A DNA stretch of 64,000 nucleotides from Oopsacas minuta (taxonomy: Eukaryota; Animalia; Porifera): positions 248,001 through 312,000 of the forward strand of contig JAKMXF010000011.1 of assembly GCA_024704765.1 (NCBI GenBank), read 5' to 3'. Under the pieces are notes generated by a model. The model had not been told where the DNA came from and did no database searches. It was given only the letters and a program-made list of their open reading frames with translations. Of the stretch, positions 11,557 through 54,031 are shown in pieces. The position numbers were made by a program, and so were the translations under genes. Positions within the stretch are counted from its first letter, which is position 1. The number at the start of each line of letters is the position of its first letter.

Positions 11557-12478
11557 TACAGTGTGGCAAAATGGTGATCATGCGGTAATGGGTACTTACA
11601 CTGAAGATATATGTTAAAATGTTGTCATATATACTAAATTGACTCTGTAGATTTCAAAAATGGCACCAGACTTTTGATTGCATTTCTAGGAATGGAACTA
11701 TGACGTAACCTGTGGTATTTTGATTCAATTATGGTTCAAGAGTACATGAGTCCTAATTTTTTGAGTGTTTTTATCTATCAACACTATTTATTGACAAACC
11801 TGAATAACAATGCGTATGATGAATTCAATTCTGCATTGAATACTTCAAAAATGATATCAATGAATTATATATATAGTAAATATAAAATATTATAGCGATT
11901 AATAAAATTTTCTAAAAGATATTTCATCCGACTCCGTGTGCCCCATGCACTCAATGTCAAAAAATATAAGTGGGCACCTGAAGATGGGGTCTAGAAATTA
12001 TTGAAAATGAAATTAGGAAAGATATACTAGGTGAAATTGTCGACTATCCAACTCGCAAATACTTACAATGTAAGATCGGGGAACTAGATTGTAGGTCAAG
12101 GAGCTGAAATATGGATAAAAATAGATGGCTAAAAATGCTTGGGAATGAAAAAAATTAAGTTTTAATGTGCTTTGCAAAGGAGTTAAAGTTAATAATATAA
12201 TGTATACGAATACTGATAAATGCCATTGAATTACCGAAAATCCAGGAATGGTGAAGTATCACAAGGGTATTTGAAGAATAAATATTTGTGAATTCGAGGT
12301 TTTCAAATTTCAAATTTTAGCCTAAGCTTGAAACTTTGGTTAAACACATTATAAGTTCATTAAGTAACAATAATAGCATATTTCTATGTTTGAAATAGTG
12401 CAAAAGCGAATGCACACATTAATTTTGGTAAATATCGAAGTCAAATTCTCATCTATTACCGCATAATTCCATATTAAG
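11557..12478. mobile_element. Non-autonomous RAG1-like/Transib element (922 bp) related to 41909-45021
   Basis: Left end TACAGTGTGGCAAAATGG...ATGCGGTAATGG. The subterminal sequence resembles that of 41909 (e.g. ATATACTAAAT.GAC.CTGTAGATTTCAAAAAT). The right end has CTATTACCGCAT, a 7-bp spacer and a decayed heptamer. The 5-bp TSD CAGAG is present at both sides (11552-11556, 12479-12483). Confidence 0.75.
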
Positions 12479-28741: not shown

Positions 28742-29783
28742 ATGGTCTCGCTTTTTGTTCTTTTGGAGCTGGAAATAGGCAGTTTACGACGCCAGAGAAT
28801 ATTTCGTGACAGGTTAAACCCTCTTGATGCATACACTGATGTAGAGTTTATTTCTCGTTATAGAATCAGAAGAGAAATGTTCTTAGAATTGCATGATAAA
28901 ATTGAGACTTTCATGTCTCGATCTACAAGCCGATCTCATTCACTTTCGGTGACAACTCAATCAGCGGTCACTCTTCAGTTTCTAGCTACGGGTAGTTTCC
29001 AAACTGTGGTTGCATCAGCTCATGGAATTTCCCAGCCCTCTGTGTCCAACTGTGTTAGAGGTGTAACAGATGCATTGTGCTCAATTGCGAAAGAGTGTAT
29101 ACAGTTTCCAACTGCTGCTAGACAGATGAGCATGCAGCATGGATTTATGGAAAAGTTCGGGTTTCCTAAAGTATTAGGTTGCATAGACGCACACATATCC
29201 CAATTGTTGCACCTAGCACCAACGAAGCAATTTATGTTAATCGTAAAAGTTTCATTCAATTAACGTCCAAGCGATATGTGACGATGTATTCAAGTTTATT
29301 GATGTAGTTGTGAAGTGGCCAGGCAGCACACATGACGCGTTCATATGAAGGCAATCAGGAATCAATCTTAAGATCGCCAGTAAAGAAATTCAAATTCTTG
29401 ATGGATGGTTTCTCGGCGATAGTGGTTATCCGTTGCGCCCAAATTTAATGACTCCGTTACTATCTCCTGTTACACCTCGCGAAAGAAGGTATAATCGTGC
29501 TTTCCTGAAGACTCGAAAGACAATTGAATGTACCTTTGGAATATGGAAGAGCAGATGGAGATCAATGGACAAGACTGGTGGCAGTTTGTGCTATAGTCCA
29601 GAGAGGGTTTGCAAACTAATCTTATCCTCCATGGTACTTCATAATTTTTGTGTTGATTGCGGTCTCCAAATTGATATTGAAGACTTGGAAAGTGATATGC
29701 CCTACATCGAAACAAAAGACACTGAACATTCAGATAATGGGATTTTAGTTCGAGAAAATATAATTATAAATTATTTCACATGA
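28742..29783 (+). pseudogene. Harbinger DDE nuclease (HARBI1-like), with frameshifts near 29190-29250 and a TGA at a Trp codon (~29347)
   Basis: Motifs LQFLATGSFQ, GISQPSVS, GCID(G)[18 protein letters not shown] and IECTFGIWKSRW. Confidence 0.93.
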
Positions 29784-39690: not shown

Positions 39691-41908
39691 AAGAGAAAAA
39701 CAACGGAGACTTACCCCTATGTTAAGTTTCAGGGGTTATTTGTTAAGGCGACAAAATTATGATGTTTATTAAAAGAAAAGAATTAAGGTATGAGGCAAGT
39801 AAATGTTTTAAGGTATGTAAAGGCTAATATCATAAGGTATTAATTCAGGAATGGCAGAAATGAGTTAACAGGATCAAATTAAAGTTAACAGCACATCTTT
39901 CCTTCCTCCAAAACCTATTAACCTTCTAAAATTATTGTTCTTCTACGCTGTTAACAGCAAATTAGTAGCTGTTATGGGTTGGAAACTACATTTAATTAAC
40001 TGAAGGATAGTTGGAGCTAAAAGAAAAAATTTTAAGAAATTAACCTTAAATATATAAATATTTGTGAGATAAGGAATACTTAATTCCGTAAGAGGATTAT
40101 TATTTGATAAATTGCTGCAAAGGTTTGTAGATATTTCAGGAGTTGCAGGTAAACTACAAGTTGAGAATAGAAGTACCCGTAGATACCACGCAATGGAGAA
40201 TAGATTGGTCGAGGCTCACAATAAGATCTTCAAATGTTATTGTTCCTATTAAAACAATGATTCCTTTAATAATGTTGATGAAATATGGCTTCCATTAATT
40301 TTAGAACACTTGGATCTATCTCAGTTAAGTTAGTAGTGAGGTTCGTTGGAGGACTATGACGAGGCAATATCAGTTTAGAAATTAATATGCAAGTAAAATT
40401 AAACGACACCACCGAAAGATAACAGCAGAAATCGAATATCATCACAAACATTCACATCGAATTATGGGTGCGAATATTTGACAAACAGTTCAAATCACAG
40501 TAAAACGTAATTCTGCCTTCGGGAATCCGAAAACGGCCAGTTTAACTTTAACCATTAAGTAGAAAAGTACTACTTCAATTACATAATATCATACTAACAG
40601 AGTTCACAGGCTGTATTTTTCATAATAAACAGGAAATTGATAAGACAGATGCACACTGGTTAAAATTGGTCACAACTACTTAAATCGCTTGTACAAATCC
40701 GAGTTATCTTGCAGCGGCTGATAACTCATTTATATTACGTAAAGCTAACCGTACTTCAGTACGATTAGCTTTAAGTAACATTGCGAAAAAAGTGCTCAAG
40801 AATCCTGCTAAAGTTGGTCAATGATTTCCATCATACTGAAGCAATAATTATCCTAAAGTACTAAGATTTAGTATCAAGTAAGACATTGAAACAAATTCTC
40901 TGGTTTTCTAAAAAAAAGTAACACAAATTTCAGGATATCTTGACAGATGCAGGTAGGGTGGCGCTATATGGGTCTTGGGGGATAGCTATATTTCTATACA
41001 CCCTAAATAATGCTCTTGGACCCCTCAGCGAGATTGTATCAATAGACATCGGCCATTTCGTGATATATACATATATAATACTAATAGGGATACCTCAGAG
41101 ATACGACATCATATGGAAATAATTTTGTGCCGCATCTAACCTCTGAGTCCTTATACACGCTTAATATACAATTTTGGGCCGAAAATATCAGGATGCTAAC
41201 AATAATAAGTATTATCATAGTGATTAACACCGATTCACCCAGGAGCAAGTTTTGGCCAAGAAATTGTTTGTGTCTATCTATAAGCTATAATTCTATATGG
41301 ACCTAAGGATTAAATTGATAAAATTAAAGATATTGTGGCCAGAGATGTATTCCTAAGCATAAAAGTAAGGGAATGCTCCATAACAGCCCCTTCACTACAT
41401 TTGCGCCTCTTATGTGGTAAAATAGACGCCTTTTGAAGTAGTTTTCGATTGGTCAGGTTGACTTATACAAATAATATGGAGCTACTGTAGTTGGCGGGGC
41501 TGACTAAGACAATTTGAATTAGCAAACCAATGTTGGTCCGGTTGAAACTTGACCAATCGGACACTCTCCAACGGCCATGTCCTAGATTCCCAGACTTTCT
41601 ATATTAACATCTTATGAAATACAGGCTATTTACACTAAATGTGGAAAATTCAAAGTAAAACGTGGGTGCCACCATATTTAGTACTTATTAGCTGAAAATC
41701 GAAGGAACATAAGCATTCCACATGTAAATTATACTTACACAACAATTGGATAATACGAAATATATTACTTGGTAATAAAATATTGACTACATTGTCTAAC
41801 TAATTTCTAAACTGAAAATATAGTTAGCCAAAACGGCAAAGTGAATGGGTGTTACGAGAATATTTGAGTAATAAATCTTGATTTACTAATTTTACGAAAT
41901 CAAGATTT

Positions 41909-41944
41909 CACAGTGTGGCAAAATGGCCATAATGGGGAAATAGG
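41909..41944 (+). repeat. 3' TIR (long-spacer end): CACAGTG + 16 bp + ATGGGGAAATAGG
   Basis: Read directly: heptamer 41909-41915, spacer TGGCAAAATGGCCATA, distal box 41932-41944. Confidence 0.93.
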
Positions 41945-42227
41945 TAAATGAATCTGTATTATCGCCACAATTATACTTACATATACTAAATCGACACTGT
42001 AGATTTCAAAAATACCAATGATTATTTAGTAGCACGACTATAAACCTAGTTATGACGTAATTACTGACATTTTCTAATTTTTAGCACTTGTAGTTTCATT
42101 AGTGAGGATATTATGAAAGTTGATAATACATGCATGTCATGGTCTCTATTCTGCTATTTGATAACGTACAATTTAAAGACCCTTAATTATGTATGACTAT
42201 TGGATACACTTATTATCATAAATCATC

Positions 42228-44357
42228 TCATAGTATACTATTATATAATATTTCTTGGAGGCTATTTGCAACGTCTCTTTTCTTCTTTGCGTGCATCAAA
42301 CGATTCTGTACTAAGATGGGGTCACTACAACATAACAACCTGACTAAAATATCTCTAACATTATCAGTGAAAGAAGTTTTTCTTGCAAGATTCTCCCGAT
42401 ACCGCCTTACAAATTTATTGCAGGATTCTAAACATTCCTTAGAGAGATTCTGTAATCCCTTACCATTATTATAAGCACCTATTAACTGAAACGAATGGGC
42501 AAGTAACTTGTGCAAAGATGGAGTGATGCTTGCCCATGGGTACTCAATTAGAATAAATTCGTACGTTTCTTTGCACAATTCTTGCATTTTGTCACAGTTA
42601 ATCAAGTCACCACTGTTGAGGAGTCTTAACAAAACAGATAGATTTGTCTGGATCTTCTCTAATGATATTTTATCTGAAGGATTAATGGAAGAAGTGGCCC
42701 ACGTCAAAAAGTCTCTCTTATTTAAAAAGCAGTCTCGCGCAATGTTACCAGTGGTTGAAGTGCCGCCCTGGCTTGAAGGGATATCGACACTGAAATTACA
42801 TCTTTCCTGGAGTATAGCTCGAACCCGTTTCATGGAAAAATTTACTTTCGAGTTTGATGGCGCCCATACCTTGTGTCCTGCATCAAGATGGTATATCAAC
42901 AGCATGAACCACCTGAATACACAAAGGTAAGCATGCAAAGGAGATGCAGCTATAATATCGATGTTAGAAGTTGGTTGATGCGTAATACCAACACGTTGAT
43001 TTGATGGGAGTTTCAAGTAATCTTCTTCATCAACCTCTTCAAAAAGTTGCCGAGCGTCGCTAATTAGTCTGTTAATAGGGAAACCAGAATGGGCCCATTC
43101 TAAACTTTTAATTTGGCTATCCGTTGCAGTACACAGATGACAAGAAGCCCCACCAGCTCCATCCAGCAATCCTGCCATCTTGGTATCAAAAAGGGAACGG
43201 ACTATCTCGACCTGTGCATGGCCTCCAATAAGAGATAACCCATCCTGTATGATATGGTCTGTTTGAGGATTGACTATTGTATTCATGATAAGCTTTACAC
43301 TAGAATAATCTTCTTTCAGAGCTATCAGTGCTACTGGCCTAAAGCAGAACGGAGAGTTGGGTGAGCTGTTATAGAACACGTCATTTCCAAGTGTGTCTGT
43401 AATTGATATTACTTTGAATCCGAACAAAATGAAAGTTTTTGTGCTTAATGCAGAATTGTTGCTTTGTTGGTTATAGGTTTGATGACAACCGGAGCCATCC
43501 AATCCATCAGATATCTTAATTTTGAGTGGGTAGTGTGAATCAGGAACTAGGTCTAATGTTGAAAGCAAGCGTTGAATGGTCAGACTAAGGATGGAATGAT
43601 AAGAGACGCAAGTCCCAATTGACAATGCTTCGGGGTCTCTGACTATTTCCATTTCATTTATTAGGCTTATTTCCCTACGATATTGCGAGACAAGTTTATA
43701 GGAAGGAAGCTTAACATCACCTTTGAGAATTCTTTTCAGATTCGTGTATTTACTCGCCCCAATTTCTAATCTGTCCAATATATAAGCACATTTAGAGATT
43801 TGTACTTTGTTCAATACACCGCTAAAAGATCCCTTATCAATTATTTCTCTGCACATGTCTGAAGTATCACGGTCATAGGATTTATTTGAGACTAATTCTA
43901 AAGCTAGAGCGAGTAGTTGTTTAGGCTCAATCTTTTCTCTCTCTGCTAAAAAGTCCACATGCTCTAAAAGAACACCAAGTCTCGATCTGGAAGTCTTCAT
44001 GTGACATTCGAGAATATGCTTCCGGGATTCAGTTACAATCTGTTCTGAAAAGTTTCGATTTTCAGAATCAGTGACTAAAGAAAATTCAGGATCAAGCGAT
44101 ATTCTCTTTCTTGGATTGGATATTGTTAGATGAGTAGGGTGGAAAATCATATTATCCCATGTTTCAAGATCCTTCCTGCGGTAAGCCTCTCTGGATGTTA
44201 GAAGTGATTTAAATTTTAAATGAAGAGTAGCAGTTTCTTCTTCGGATAAATGGTTGTTCTCAATAAGTTTCCTAACAGAGACTGTAACACTTCTTCCATT
44301 CGAAATATACAAACTATATGCCTCATTGTTGGTGATTAGTACAGACATGATCCGCAA
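42228..44357 (-). CDS. RAG1-core-like/Transib DDE transposase, 709 aa, uninterrupted
   Basis: Motifs with RAG1 counterparts: GLDGS D287 (D600 motif), PNSPFCFRPVAL (PNSELCCKPLCL), SLFDTK D391 (D708), CHLC 406-409, PLH, TTGNIAR (NGNFAR), LHKLLAH 615-621 (FHKTLAH), ECLESCNKFVRRYRENLARK with E644 ([20 protein letters not shown]). Confidence 0.95.
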   Translation of the reverse strand: MRIMSVLITNNEAYSLYISNGRSVTVSVRKLIENNHLSEEETATLHLKFKSLLTSREAYRRKDLETWDNMIFHPTHLTISNPRKRISLDPEFSLVTDSENRNFSEQIVTESRKHILECHMKTSRSRLGVLLEHVDFLAEREKIEPKQLLALALELVSNKSYDRDTSDMCREIIDKGSFSGVLNKVQISKCAYILDRLEIGASKYTNLKRILKGDVKLPSYKLVSQYRREISLINEMEIVRDPEALSIGTCVSYHSILSLTIQRLLSTLDLVPDSHYPLKIKISDGLDGSGCHQTYNQQSNNSALSTKTFILFGFKVISITDTLGNDVFYNSSPNSPFCFRPVALIALKEDYSSVKLIMNTIVNPQTDHIIQDGLSLIGGHAQVEIVRSLFDTKMAGLLDGAGGASCHLCTATDSQIKSLEWAHSGFPINRLISDARQLFEEVDEEDYLKLPSNQRVGITHQPTSNIDIIAASPLHAYLCVFRWFMLLIYHLDAGHKVWAPSNSKVNFSMKRVRAILQERCNFSVDIPSSQGGTSTTGNIARDCFLNKRDFLTWATSSINPSDKISLEKIQTNLSVLLRLLNSGDLINCDKMQELCKETYEFILIEYPWASITPSLHKLLAHSFQLIGAYNNGKGLQNLSKECLESCNKFVRRYRENLARKTSFTDNVRDILVRLLCCSDPILVQNRLMHAKKKRDVANSLQEILYNSIL

Positions 44358-44994
44358 AAGGGCTACTTTAACATAGAAACATTATGATATATGATTGTAG
44401 AGTATTGGAATAACTAATAACCAGCAAAATATAGAATTTTACTGAAAAAATTTAAAACGTATGAAAAATATATTTTTCGGATTTTTGTCCGGTCCGGACA
44501 ATGAATGACGTGATAAATTTTTGGGCAGCTTTTGGCAAGCCTGGAAAGTGATTAAATAGTTGACTAAATATAGTAACATTACTTATATATTAATAACGTT
44601 TTGTCAAATTTTGTCAAACAAGAGATGCTACACTTCAATCAATGAGAAAAAATTCCAAATTATAAGTTTGGGAGGGCCAAACTAGACACCCGGAAAAAAG
44701 TACAAATGAATATCTAGACTAACCTATCAATGATTAAATTGTTGTTACAATATAGATTTATTATCAGAAGATGTTTTTCACTCTTATATTTAATATTTAC
44801 ATCAAATATGATTACATACATTAGGGCATAGGAATTTGAGGTTTGAAAATATATATTTCTATTATTAGAAACACATAACAAAGTTGTGCGTAGTTAGGAT
44901 TCCTAACTGCTTCTAATGCTGCCAATGATATTTTCGTACTAATTGAACTATGGAGAATTCGAAAAATGCATTGAAATATGTTTTTTAAAATATG

Positions 44995-45021
44995 CCTATT
45001 TCCCCATATTGCCACACTGTG
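44995..45021 (-). repeat. 5' TIR (short-spacer end): CACAGTG + 7 bp + ATGGGGAAATAGG
   Basis: Read directly: heptamer 45015-45021, spacer TGGCAAT, distal box 44995-45007. Confidence 0.93.
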
Positions 45022-46309
45022 GATTTCTTCCTCGAATACTCTCACAACACCAATGCATATTCCAGTTCAACATATAAAGATTTCTTTCTCGTTTAATATC
45101 ACAACACCCAGCGTTAGCAGATGAGTTCATAAAATACATAACTCATCCTGAAAGTGTACAGCAATATAATCACTTATTGACTCGGTATATTCTAAACAGA
45201 TTGCATTTATATGTTTTAAATTGACAGACTAGAATTGTTATGAAATAATTGACTGGATTTGTTCTAAACTGATTGACTCGAATTAATCTAAATTTAGATG
45301 ATCTTCGTCTAGTAACTAGAGGAAGAAAAATGTATCTTCTTTGCAGTCTATTATCAGCTAGTTATACACTCTCTAGATAATTACTGTAAGTAAATTGTGA
45401 AACAATGACAATAATGACAAAATTCGTGCGGTAGACAAATCAGATGCGGGCGGTAGAGCTGAAATATGTTTCAAATTAACAGTGGCCTAATCTATTGGAA
45501 ACATCTTGCCTTGTGTAGACAAAAGATTCAAGTACCAGATACGCGATACTCATATACAGACCTACTCAATTTGAATTTCCGTGATTCACCATCAAAATTT
45601 TATCTGCAAAACATTCAGAATAATGATAGTTCAAATGTGATGGTAGTAGTGGCCATGGTCATCAAGGTTCCTACGCCACTGTGCTTACATCCGCCGAATA
45701 ATTTTCTATTTGCTTGCATTGAGTTACATAAAAGAAAATTACACTTCCAGTATTTGTGAATAGAACCTACTCAAGGTAAAGAAATCCAGGGAATAACTTT
45801 AGACTACTAAAATTAAAATTTGATATGGTTAATTCCATGCTAATAATCACGTTTCGAGGAATATTTGGTACTGCATTTAATTGACCAGTAACAAATTGAT
45901 ACTGTACTAATTTGAGTATCACGGTCGGGGCTTTGTGTCCTTCATGGCTGCTGAACTGGCACATTAGGTACCAAGCAAATACCCAGACCAGTGGTTCCTA
46001 ACCTTGTCCACCCGCGGACTCCCTCACATATTAAATTAGTTTCCTGTTGAACATACCTGCATTTGGACAGCATGAATACATGCCACCACAAATGATTCGT
46101 TACAGGACAGAGTTAAACGCAGAGTTGCATGCGGGCCGGAATTTCGCAACCGCGGCCCGCTATTTGAATAAATCCAGCCCCCAGCCCGCAAGAGGACCGC
46201 GAATATCTAGAACATTTGTTTCGCCATACAAATCTTAGTGGACCATAGAGAAAACGTATTAAGAAAGACTATGGGTATTTTAATAAACTAATGAAAGAAT
46301 TTTAACAGA

Positions 46310-53200: not shown

Positions 53201-54031
53201 CTTCAAATTATGCTTCACCTATTCTGTAACTGAGTATTAAAACAATAATTATTTATCAAAGAACATACCAAGGTGGATACGACTCCTATTTCAAAACAAT
53301 TCAGTCGAATTCTGGATTTTTCGCTCCTAAATGCAAGGGCAAAGAAGAAAAACGATATGCTAGGTGGCTGCACGACGGACGGAAGTATCCTTTAGCTGTG
53401 CCTCTTGTTTTAGCTGAAGTATGATACAGCTACATTTGTAAGTGCTTTTGGGTTGCTACGCGACATTAAAAAGTCAGCAATACGTGCTTCGAGGTATATC
53501 ATTGCTAAAATTGTAATTATTTATTATCTATGGTCCGTCCAAATTGAATTTAATAGCCTTCTGTGGAGATACTGGAGCTCTTACATGGATTTGGGTTAGA
53601 ATCTCGGTAATTCGTACCTCATGTTTCAAGAAATTCTAAAACTTTAAGAAATCCGGGAAAAATAATTTGTACAGTCATGATAACGTAATAATTTCACGAT
53701 GAGTTTGCAATTGTTCAAAATGATGATGTCCGGACATTCGGCATATTGTGGAGTACCTATTACCCAAAATTTGAACCACTGGTACCCACAATATGGAAAA
53801 TGCTTTGGAATTTGAATTTCAAATTTCAACAATCTACCTTGTATATTGCTGAGCAGTAGCGAATAAAGTTATTATTCGAAAATCCAAAAGGTGATAATGA
53901 CGTCACCGTCTTAGGTTTGAATTTTCTTCCAAGACTAAAGATTGTCCGCCAGGCCTTAAATGCCTATGTATGACAAAATCAGCGGTTTCAAATTTCTTGA
54001 ATCTATTCCAAACATGCAACCCATACGTATA

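Follow-up and report, generated by a model that had tools for sequence, protein, structure and literature searches.

Whether RAG2 created the 12/23 rule of V(D)J recombination or reinforced an ancestral trait of the transposase is a matter of debate (PMC4840297 versus PMC1131882, PMC8355894 and PMC9435367). Kapitonov and Jurka (2005; PMC1131882) described Transib families with RSS12-like 5′ and RSS23-like 3′ termini (RSS, recombination signal sequence) and stated that the structure of Transib suffices to derive the 12/23 rule, and Yakovenko et al. (2021; PMC8355894) built their hypothesis on this derivation. According to Tao et al. (2022; PMC9435367), asymmetric terminal inverted repeats (TIRs) occur in all Subgroup I and some Subgroup II Transibs and are a general, probably ancestral feature of Transib and RAGL elements; an ancestral origin of asymmetric TIRs is likewise assumed by Martin et al. 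(2023; PMC10629977). ProtoRAG prefers an asymmetric 5′/3′ pair without requiring it (Tao 2019; PMC8289069), and in piggyBac the LE35/RE63 asymmetry is needed in cells and only the asymmetric pair is active (PMC7351741). For the Helicoverpa zea Transib (HzTransib), the TIRs are described as symmetric and as bearing little resemblance to a nonamer (PMC8289069, PMC4840297). Sponges are not mentioned by Tao et al. (2022) or in the supplement of that paper (PMC9435367), and our literature search found no publication on Transib in the glass sponge Oopsacas minuta. Here we describe a Transib-like element with unequal ends at positions 41909–45021 of a 64,000-nucleotide stretch of the O. minuta genome (contig JAKMXF010000011.1, positions 248,001 to 312,000 of the forward strand; hereafter the window), together with its relatives.

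A Transib element with unequal ends

The element is 3,113 bp in length, starts with CACAGTG, ends with CACTGTG and is flanked on both sides by a perfect 5-bp duplication of the target site (TSD), GATTT. Both hallmarks of the Transib superfamily are present: the CAC heptamer, found as CACAGTG at both ends of the element, and the 5-bp TSD, which was also found at eight of nine further copies and in four diverged lineages (L011–L014). Within the element we identified a single long open reading frame (ORF), which encodes the transposase; the remaining ORFs are of at most 140 amino acids (aa), overlap the transposase ORF or sit in the element ends, and do not include a RAG2-like gene. The convergent RAG1L and RAG2L genes that characterize RAGL and ProtoRAG elements are not found here, and the genes neighbouring copies L001–L009 are unrelated. 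The homology of the transposase, combined with the lack of room for, or any sign of, a RAG2-like gene, identifies 41909–45021 as an autonomous Transib (RAG1-like) DNA transposon of O. minuta.

The ends of the element differ in a defined manner (Table 1). In the orientation of the gene, heptamer–7 bp–ATGGGGAAATAGG lies upstream, on the 45021 side, and heptamer–16 bp–ATGGGGAAATAGG lies downstream, on the 41909 side. A sequence-only reading of the window had described a heptamer and an identical 13-bp box separated by 7 bp at the 5′ end and 16 bp at the 3′ end, or by 12 versus 21 bp when counted to GAAATAGG. Both counts are correct, the assignment to 5′ and 3′ ends only in the minus-strand orientation of the gene; on the plus strand the long end comes first. 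A repeat search of the element returned two arm pairs (I3 and I4) that are mutually shifted by 9 bp. In all fetched DNA, the distance from heptamer to box was either 7 bp (11 matches) or 16 bp (13 matches), a pattern that is not due to chance. Two odd distances, of 15 and 30 bp, proved to be read-throughs that started at a heptamer next to the box in question or on the opposite strand, and a match to the heptamer block with 2 mismatches at 28996–29008, where there is no box, was rejected as a chance occurrence.

The distal box is G-rich with an AAAT core. Because the 6 bp next to the heptamer, TGGCAA, are common to both ends, the difference between the ends is a 9-bp block that lies between TGGCAA and the box. 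This block carries an AAATGG(C/T)-like motif that is conserved across lineages (alignment A2, 7 lineages), which argues that the extra 9 bp are not a neutral spacer. The long ends can be aligned well beyond the box (68% mean column identity over 110 bp in the 7 lineages of A2), with conserved blocks to ~100 bp. From ~41981 to 42013 the sequence is highly identical to a non-autonomous element of the type found at 11557, and the loose ends at 41981 and 42013 match that element. The 5′ ends have in common the heptamer, the box and a block of their own ~62–85 bp in (alignment A3). As in ProtoRAG, the two ends thus differ in the sequences that they carry as well as in the length of their spacers.

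Two descriptions of the extra segment were considered and dropped: a tandem duplication of the box start fits the window family (6/9 positions) and does not fit lineage L013 (2/9), and a GGCC palindrome is present in only 3 of 7 lineages. We also observed that the subterminal ACACTGTAGATTTC of the long end (41990–42003) matches the right terminus and flank, ACACTGTGGATTTC (45014–45027), at 13 of 14 positions; this likeness is probably a coincidence, because other lineages also have its ATCGAC part (A2).

Table 1 Positions of the element, its parts and a non-autonomous relative in the window
Feature	Positions	Strand	Remark
Non-autonomous relative, 922 bp, TSD CAGAG	11557..12478	+	Long end at 11557, short end at 12478
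TSD GATTT, left copy	41904..41908	.	Identical 5 bp at opposite flank
Terminal heptamer CACAGTG, gene-downstream (3′, long) end	41909..41915	+	Contigs of other copies diverge exactly at 41909
16-bp segment from heptamer to box, long end	41916..41931	+	First 6 bp match short end
Distal box ATGGGGAAATAGG, long end	41932..41944	+	Direct reading; arm pair I4
3′-end-specific subterminal region	41950..42013	+	Aligns across lineages (A2)
Transposase ORF, 709 aa from TTG, likely ATG 3 codons in	42228..44357	-	RAG1-core/Transib homologue
Nonamer-binding-domain (NBD) homologue, ~aa 113–175, four helices in model	43833..44021	-	Profile and structure alignment
5′-end-specific subterminal block, AATTC.GCATA-like, ~62–74 bp from terminus	44948..44960	-	Alignment A3
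Distal box ATGGGGAAATAGG, short end	44995..45007	-	Identical 13 bp to long-end box
7-bp spacer TGGCAAT (minus strand), short end	45008..45014	-	Direct reading
Terminal heptamer CACAGTG, gene-upstream (5′, short) end	45015..45021	-	Loose ends exactly behind 45021
TSD GATTT, right copy	45022..45026	.	Identical 5 bp at opposite flank

Conservation of the offset across lineages

We retrieved nine more full copies of the element from the O. minuta genome, each at a different site. All have the same two ends, save for one 1-bp loss in a G run, and the TSD differs from copy to copy and is perfect in 8 of the 9. Because the ten copies (including that of the window) are 99.5–99.9% identical, they constitute one evolutionary observation only. 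The extent to which the layout is conserved is seen from more distant relatives, which comprise, with the window element, six autonomous lineages whose transposases are 41–57% identical in pairwise comparisons (L010 is from O. minuta; L011–L014 are eukaryotic contigs in ENA assemblies). In 6/6 of these lineages, the end upstream of the gene is the short one and that downstream of it is the long one. The spacing is 7/16 in L010, L011, L013 and L014, and 7/17 by best box alignment in L012. The 13-bp boxes at the two ends of L010, which has no TSD, are identical, and those of L012 and L014 agree at 8/13 positions; the TSDs of L011, L012, L013 and L014 are perfect 5-bp duplications. Two other candidates, L015 (P0009) and L016 (P0003), have unrecognizable termini, flanks broken by repeats and 2–3x contig coverage, and were counted as uninformative and not as exceptions. 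A metagenome scan yielded short contigs only; a short-type 5′ end (L017) and a long-type 3′ end with AAATTGCCA (L020) are on different contigs and were not used as evidence.

Non-autonomous elements have the same layout. The long end of the relative at 11557–12478 reads TACAGTG, 16 bp and ATGCGGTAATGGG; at its short end the spacer in front of ATGCGGTAATAGA is 7 bp long, and the heptamer has decayed to CTTAATA. A second non-autonomous copy (L008, 620–1327) has an intact short-end CACAGTG and a long/short layout equal to that of 11557–12478. Every complete element that we saw, autonomous or non-autonomous, has one short and one long end, although the sample is small.

These results bear out two statements of the sequence-only reading: that 7/16 spacing is retained at 11557–12478 despite a different box; and that the asymmetry is not a one-off indel, given that offset and polarity recur in five other autonomous lineages and two non-autonomous copies. 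One short and one long end are found in each of the ten copies, the five lineages and the two non-autonomous copies. The sequences of spacers and boxes diverged while spacing and polarity were kept, which is the mark of selection on the architecture. We conclude from this comparison that the ~9-bp offset and its polarity are under selection.

The window also contains a solo Transib-like end of the short type on the minus strand (53740–53800), which consists of a heptamer-like ACCAGTG followed by GTTCAAA and GGGTAATAGG. The latter is placed one bp further in than in L013, and the solo end is flanked by the inverted 9-mers ATATTGTGG and CCACAATAT.

Transposase and nonamer-binding domain

A Pfam scan of the window transposase returned nothing at E ≤ 1, and homology was therefore established from searches of PDB sequences and with profiles. 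The protein matches HzTransib (6pqn, E = 6.6e-26) as well as amphioxus RAG1L, and a family profile built from 16 relatives matches HzTransib (6pqn, 7.8e-46), BbeRAG1L (2.4e-19) and vertebrate RAG1 (~5e-16). Relatives of the transposase carry a precomputed match to PF26100 (RAG1_RNase_H). The invariant residues of the DDE region, D287, D391 and E641/E644, are present (columns of alignment A1). An AlphaFold (AF2) model of the transposase (predicted local distance difference test score, pLDDT, 82) superposes on RAG1 and HzTransib structures, with HzTransib as the closest solved structure (TM-score normalized to the target 0.84 for 6pqx). The best protein match is an O. minuta protein with 99% identity, in a cluster of 33 members of which every listed member is from assembly GCA_024704765.1.

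The alignment between the family profile and RAG1 begins inside the NBD, at the RAG1 segment GRPRQHLL, where the family consensus is RKxLSxLTxKxxRxRLSxLL. The profile also matches the isolated NBD–DNA structure 3gna (E = 0.005), and in the structure search the aligned length was ~650 columns for RAG1 chains with the NBD versus ~577 for chains that lack it. Helices are predicted at residues 120–175 of the model, as in a RAG1-type NBD. Alignment of the HzTransib chain does not start until position 169 of the profile, so that the NBD part is missing from it. The GRPR/K minor-groove motif is absent from the NBD homologue: in its place the window protein shows ESRKHIL and the family consensus RKxLSxLT. 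By its homology, the domain could be the reader of the distal box. Because the GRPR motif is missing and the box does not resemble an A-rich nonamer, contact between box and domain is something that we infer.

A C-terminal zinc knuckle, CxxCGxxGHxxxxC (CTT1/CTT* type, CCGHC), is found in 10 of the 16 relatives in alignment A1 (P0002–5, P0007, P0010 and P0016–19, in the form CxxCGExGHxxxxC). It is absent from the window protein and from P0006, P0009, P0011, P0012 and P0015. The knuckle that marks Subgroup I and RAG1L proteins (PMC9435367) is thus kept in several relatives of the window protein and missing from the window family itself. In the window family, as in five others, the zinc knuckle has been lost, yet these families retain 7/16 ends.

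Comparison with known systems

The insect families Transib5, Transib2_AG and TransibN1-3_AG (PMC1131882) share with the sponge element a Transib transposase, a 5-bp TSD, a CAC heptamer and the lack of RAG2, as well as bipartite ends of the same polarity, short at 5′ and long at 3′. They differ from it in spacing (~12/23, a difference of 11, versus 7/16, a difference of 9), in an A-rich nonamer in place of the ATGGGGAAATAGG-like distal element and in GC-rich TSDs, whereas those in the sponge, a hexactinellid host, are mostly AT-rich. Of the features by which Kapitonov and Jurka defined such ends, inequality with a short 5′ and a long 3′ terminus is found in six autonomous lineages and one non-autonomous family. 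Spacers of 12 ± 1 and 23 ± 1 bp with an A-rich nonamer are not found, the spacing being 7/16 to the start of the box and 12/21 as far as GAAATAGG. In AanRAGL, spacers of 4/13 bp separate two conserved elements (PMC9435367), and the ends differ by 9 bp, as do those of the window element. The ctenophore MleTransib_2823 (supplement of PMC9435367) also has a CACAGTG heptamer and unequal ends, but the longer end is labelled 5′.

ProtoRAG (PMC8289069) is similar in that the heptamer is accompanied by further conserved elements and end-specific blocks and in its 5-bp TSD; unlike the sponge element, it encodes RAG2L, binds its TIRs via the CTT* domain and has a spacer asymmetry of 27/31. The RSSs of V(D)J recombination have the identical heptamer, CACAGTG, and a second element at two fixed distances, and RAG1 has a homologous NBD. 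However, the 12/23 rule needs RAG2 and rests on a difference of 11 bp, whereas the sponge ends differ by 9 bp and the system is without nonamer and GRPR motif. The analogy is weakest at the long-end spacer, because RSS spacers are weakly conserved and the extra block of the sponge element is conserved. HzTransib, which lacks both the N-terminal domain and the NBD, has TIRs that are described as symmetric (PMC8289069). In this comparison bipartite, unequal ends accompany Transibs that bear an NBD and symmetric ends accompany HzTransib, which has none; this is a correlation and no proof of contact. The ends of piggyBac have common repeats at different distances and use no accessory protein, although the transposase is of an unrelated superfamily, the targets are TTAA and the chemistry is different.

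Proposed mechanism and alternatives

We propose that the left and right ends are functionally differentiated and that the fixed offset gives a preference for synapsis of a short with a long end, of the kind seen in ProtoRAG and piggyBac and without RAG2, and consider this somewhat probable. By homology with HzTransib and RAG1, a dimer of the transposase would nick at the heptamers, after which the flanks would be hairpinned and the element integrated with a 5-bp stagger; the part of this that is observed here is the 5-bp duplication. The RAG1-type NBD homologue (aa ~113–175), missing in HzTransib, would bind the distal boxes. Less securely, an NBD dimer may engage both boxes, with the 9-bp offset favouring a synaptic pair of the 5′ (short) and 3′ (long) ends. 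Such pairing would be a preference and need not be absolute.

Several points weigh against this proposal. The long-end ‘spacer’ is conserved in sequence, which an additional binding site would explain no less well than a length rule, and 12/23 is not enforced by RAG1 on its own (Carmona 2016; PMC4840297). The NBD homologue has no GRPR motif, and an A-rich nonamer is not what the box consists of. The offsets of L012 and L014 are less certain than the others, because the boxes at their two ends are only weakly similar (8/13). Finally, 9 bp corresponds to ~0.86 of a helical turn, which falls short of the full turn to which the sequence-only reading had likened it. That reading had suggested a 12/23-like spacer rule that operates without RAG2. 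The absence of RAG2 was borne out, there being no RAG2-like gene in the element, as was its account of the ends as bipartite and asymmetric; a rule of spacer length pure and simple does not survive, since the motif in the long-end spacer is conserved and there are end-specific blocks.

The best-surviving alternative is that the ends are differentiated without any pairing preference, such that any two ends with heptamer and box would be accepted, and that the extra 9 bp and the 3′ blocks form a binding or regulatory site of the 3′ end only (one that serves, for example, a host protein with bending activity, another domain of the transposase or the formation of the transcript 3′ end). This would account for a conserved AAATGG-like motif where free sequence might be expected and for the ~60 bp of further conserved sequence at the 3′ end that is missing at the 5′ end. 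The long end is always downstream of the gene, as expected if it had gene-related functions, but non-autonomous copies, which need no such functions, retain the layout, and all complete elements seen have one end of each kind; both of these counterpoints come from a small sample. The lack of a 12/23 preference of RAG1 without RAG2 (PMC4840297) is also consistent with ends that do not select their partners. We regard this explanation as possible but rather less than probable.

Claims of obligatory pairing fare worse than the preference for short with long ends proposed above. That the whole sponge Transib clade enforces 7/16 pairing through a RAG1-type NBD dimer, without RAG2, seems unlikely. 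A strict rule of the 12/23 type, the strong form of the sequence-only reading, by which one 7-bp and one 16-bp end would be obligatory owing to the geometry of an NBD dimer and without RAG2, is more doubtful again, even though the offset is kept across lineages with 41–57% protein identity, an NBD homologue is present and the ends of AanRAGL likewise differ by 9 bp (4/13; PMC9435367). It is disfavoured because among known relatives ProtoRAG has no more than a preference and RAG1 alone has none, because 9 bp is less than a full turn and because L012 is 7/17, so that the length may vary by a base pair. A neutral indel that arose in the past in a single founder copy and was spread by a recent burst would fit ten copies that are by themselves a single observation, but has a negligible probability and is refuted for practical purposes, since the identical offset and polarity recur in five other autonomous lineages and the non-autonomous family despite diverged spacers and boxes.

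Recent mobility

The similarity of the copies shows that the window family transposed very recently. In public sequencing runs of O. minuta, 41909 and 45021 are the exact points at which contigs depart from the window, continuing into many different flanks, and the summed word depth inside the element is ~100–400x that of the flanks, a quantity that does not equate to copy number. One contig (run X3) joins 41956 to 44584 and represents an internally deleted derivative of ~490 bp with both ends kept. No contig in the public runs skips the whole element, as an empty site would; these runs are stored as contigs and hence are silent on excision.

Individual insertions have features of their own. 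Directly outside the left end of the window element is a 17-bp inverted repeat (41873–41908; 88% complementary, 2-nt loop) that includes the TSD copy, and this small palindrome may have been the insertion target. The TSD is imperfect at L007 (AATCA versus AATTG) and missing at L010 (AGTAC versus CCAAG), the ends of which are intact; mutation of the flank or recombination between copies is a possible cause. In L008, a full-length copy of the window family sits just 1 bp beyond the point where a non-autonomous Transib terminates at its short end (L008, 620–1340), and the TSD of the inserted copy, TGTGG, overlaps the final 4 bp of the heptamer of that element; one Transib therefore landed on the end of another. 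Run X5, from a different organism (organism B), has contigs that are 90–99% similar to the transposase gene (42155–44380) and nothing like the 5′ leader (44513–44905), which suggests either a related family in another species or carry-over between samples.

Significance

The idea that short and long ends pair is not new, and the current picture is unchanged, since asymmetry of Transib ends was already described in 2005. The sponge clade provides comparative evidence for a selected ~9-bp offset between the ends of RAG2-less Transibs, maintained over deep divergence. From this conservation, the asymmetry is functional in an evolutionary sense, and its interpretation in terms of pairing is plausible. 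The window family is a clean, very young, apparently intact and NBD-bearing candidate for an experimental system. If obligatory 7/16 pairing were true, the logic could be tested with this young and apparently intact element, which is present in at least 10 copies that are 99.5–99.9% identical, and the structural logic of the 12/23 rule would predate the capture of RAG2.

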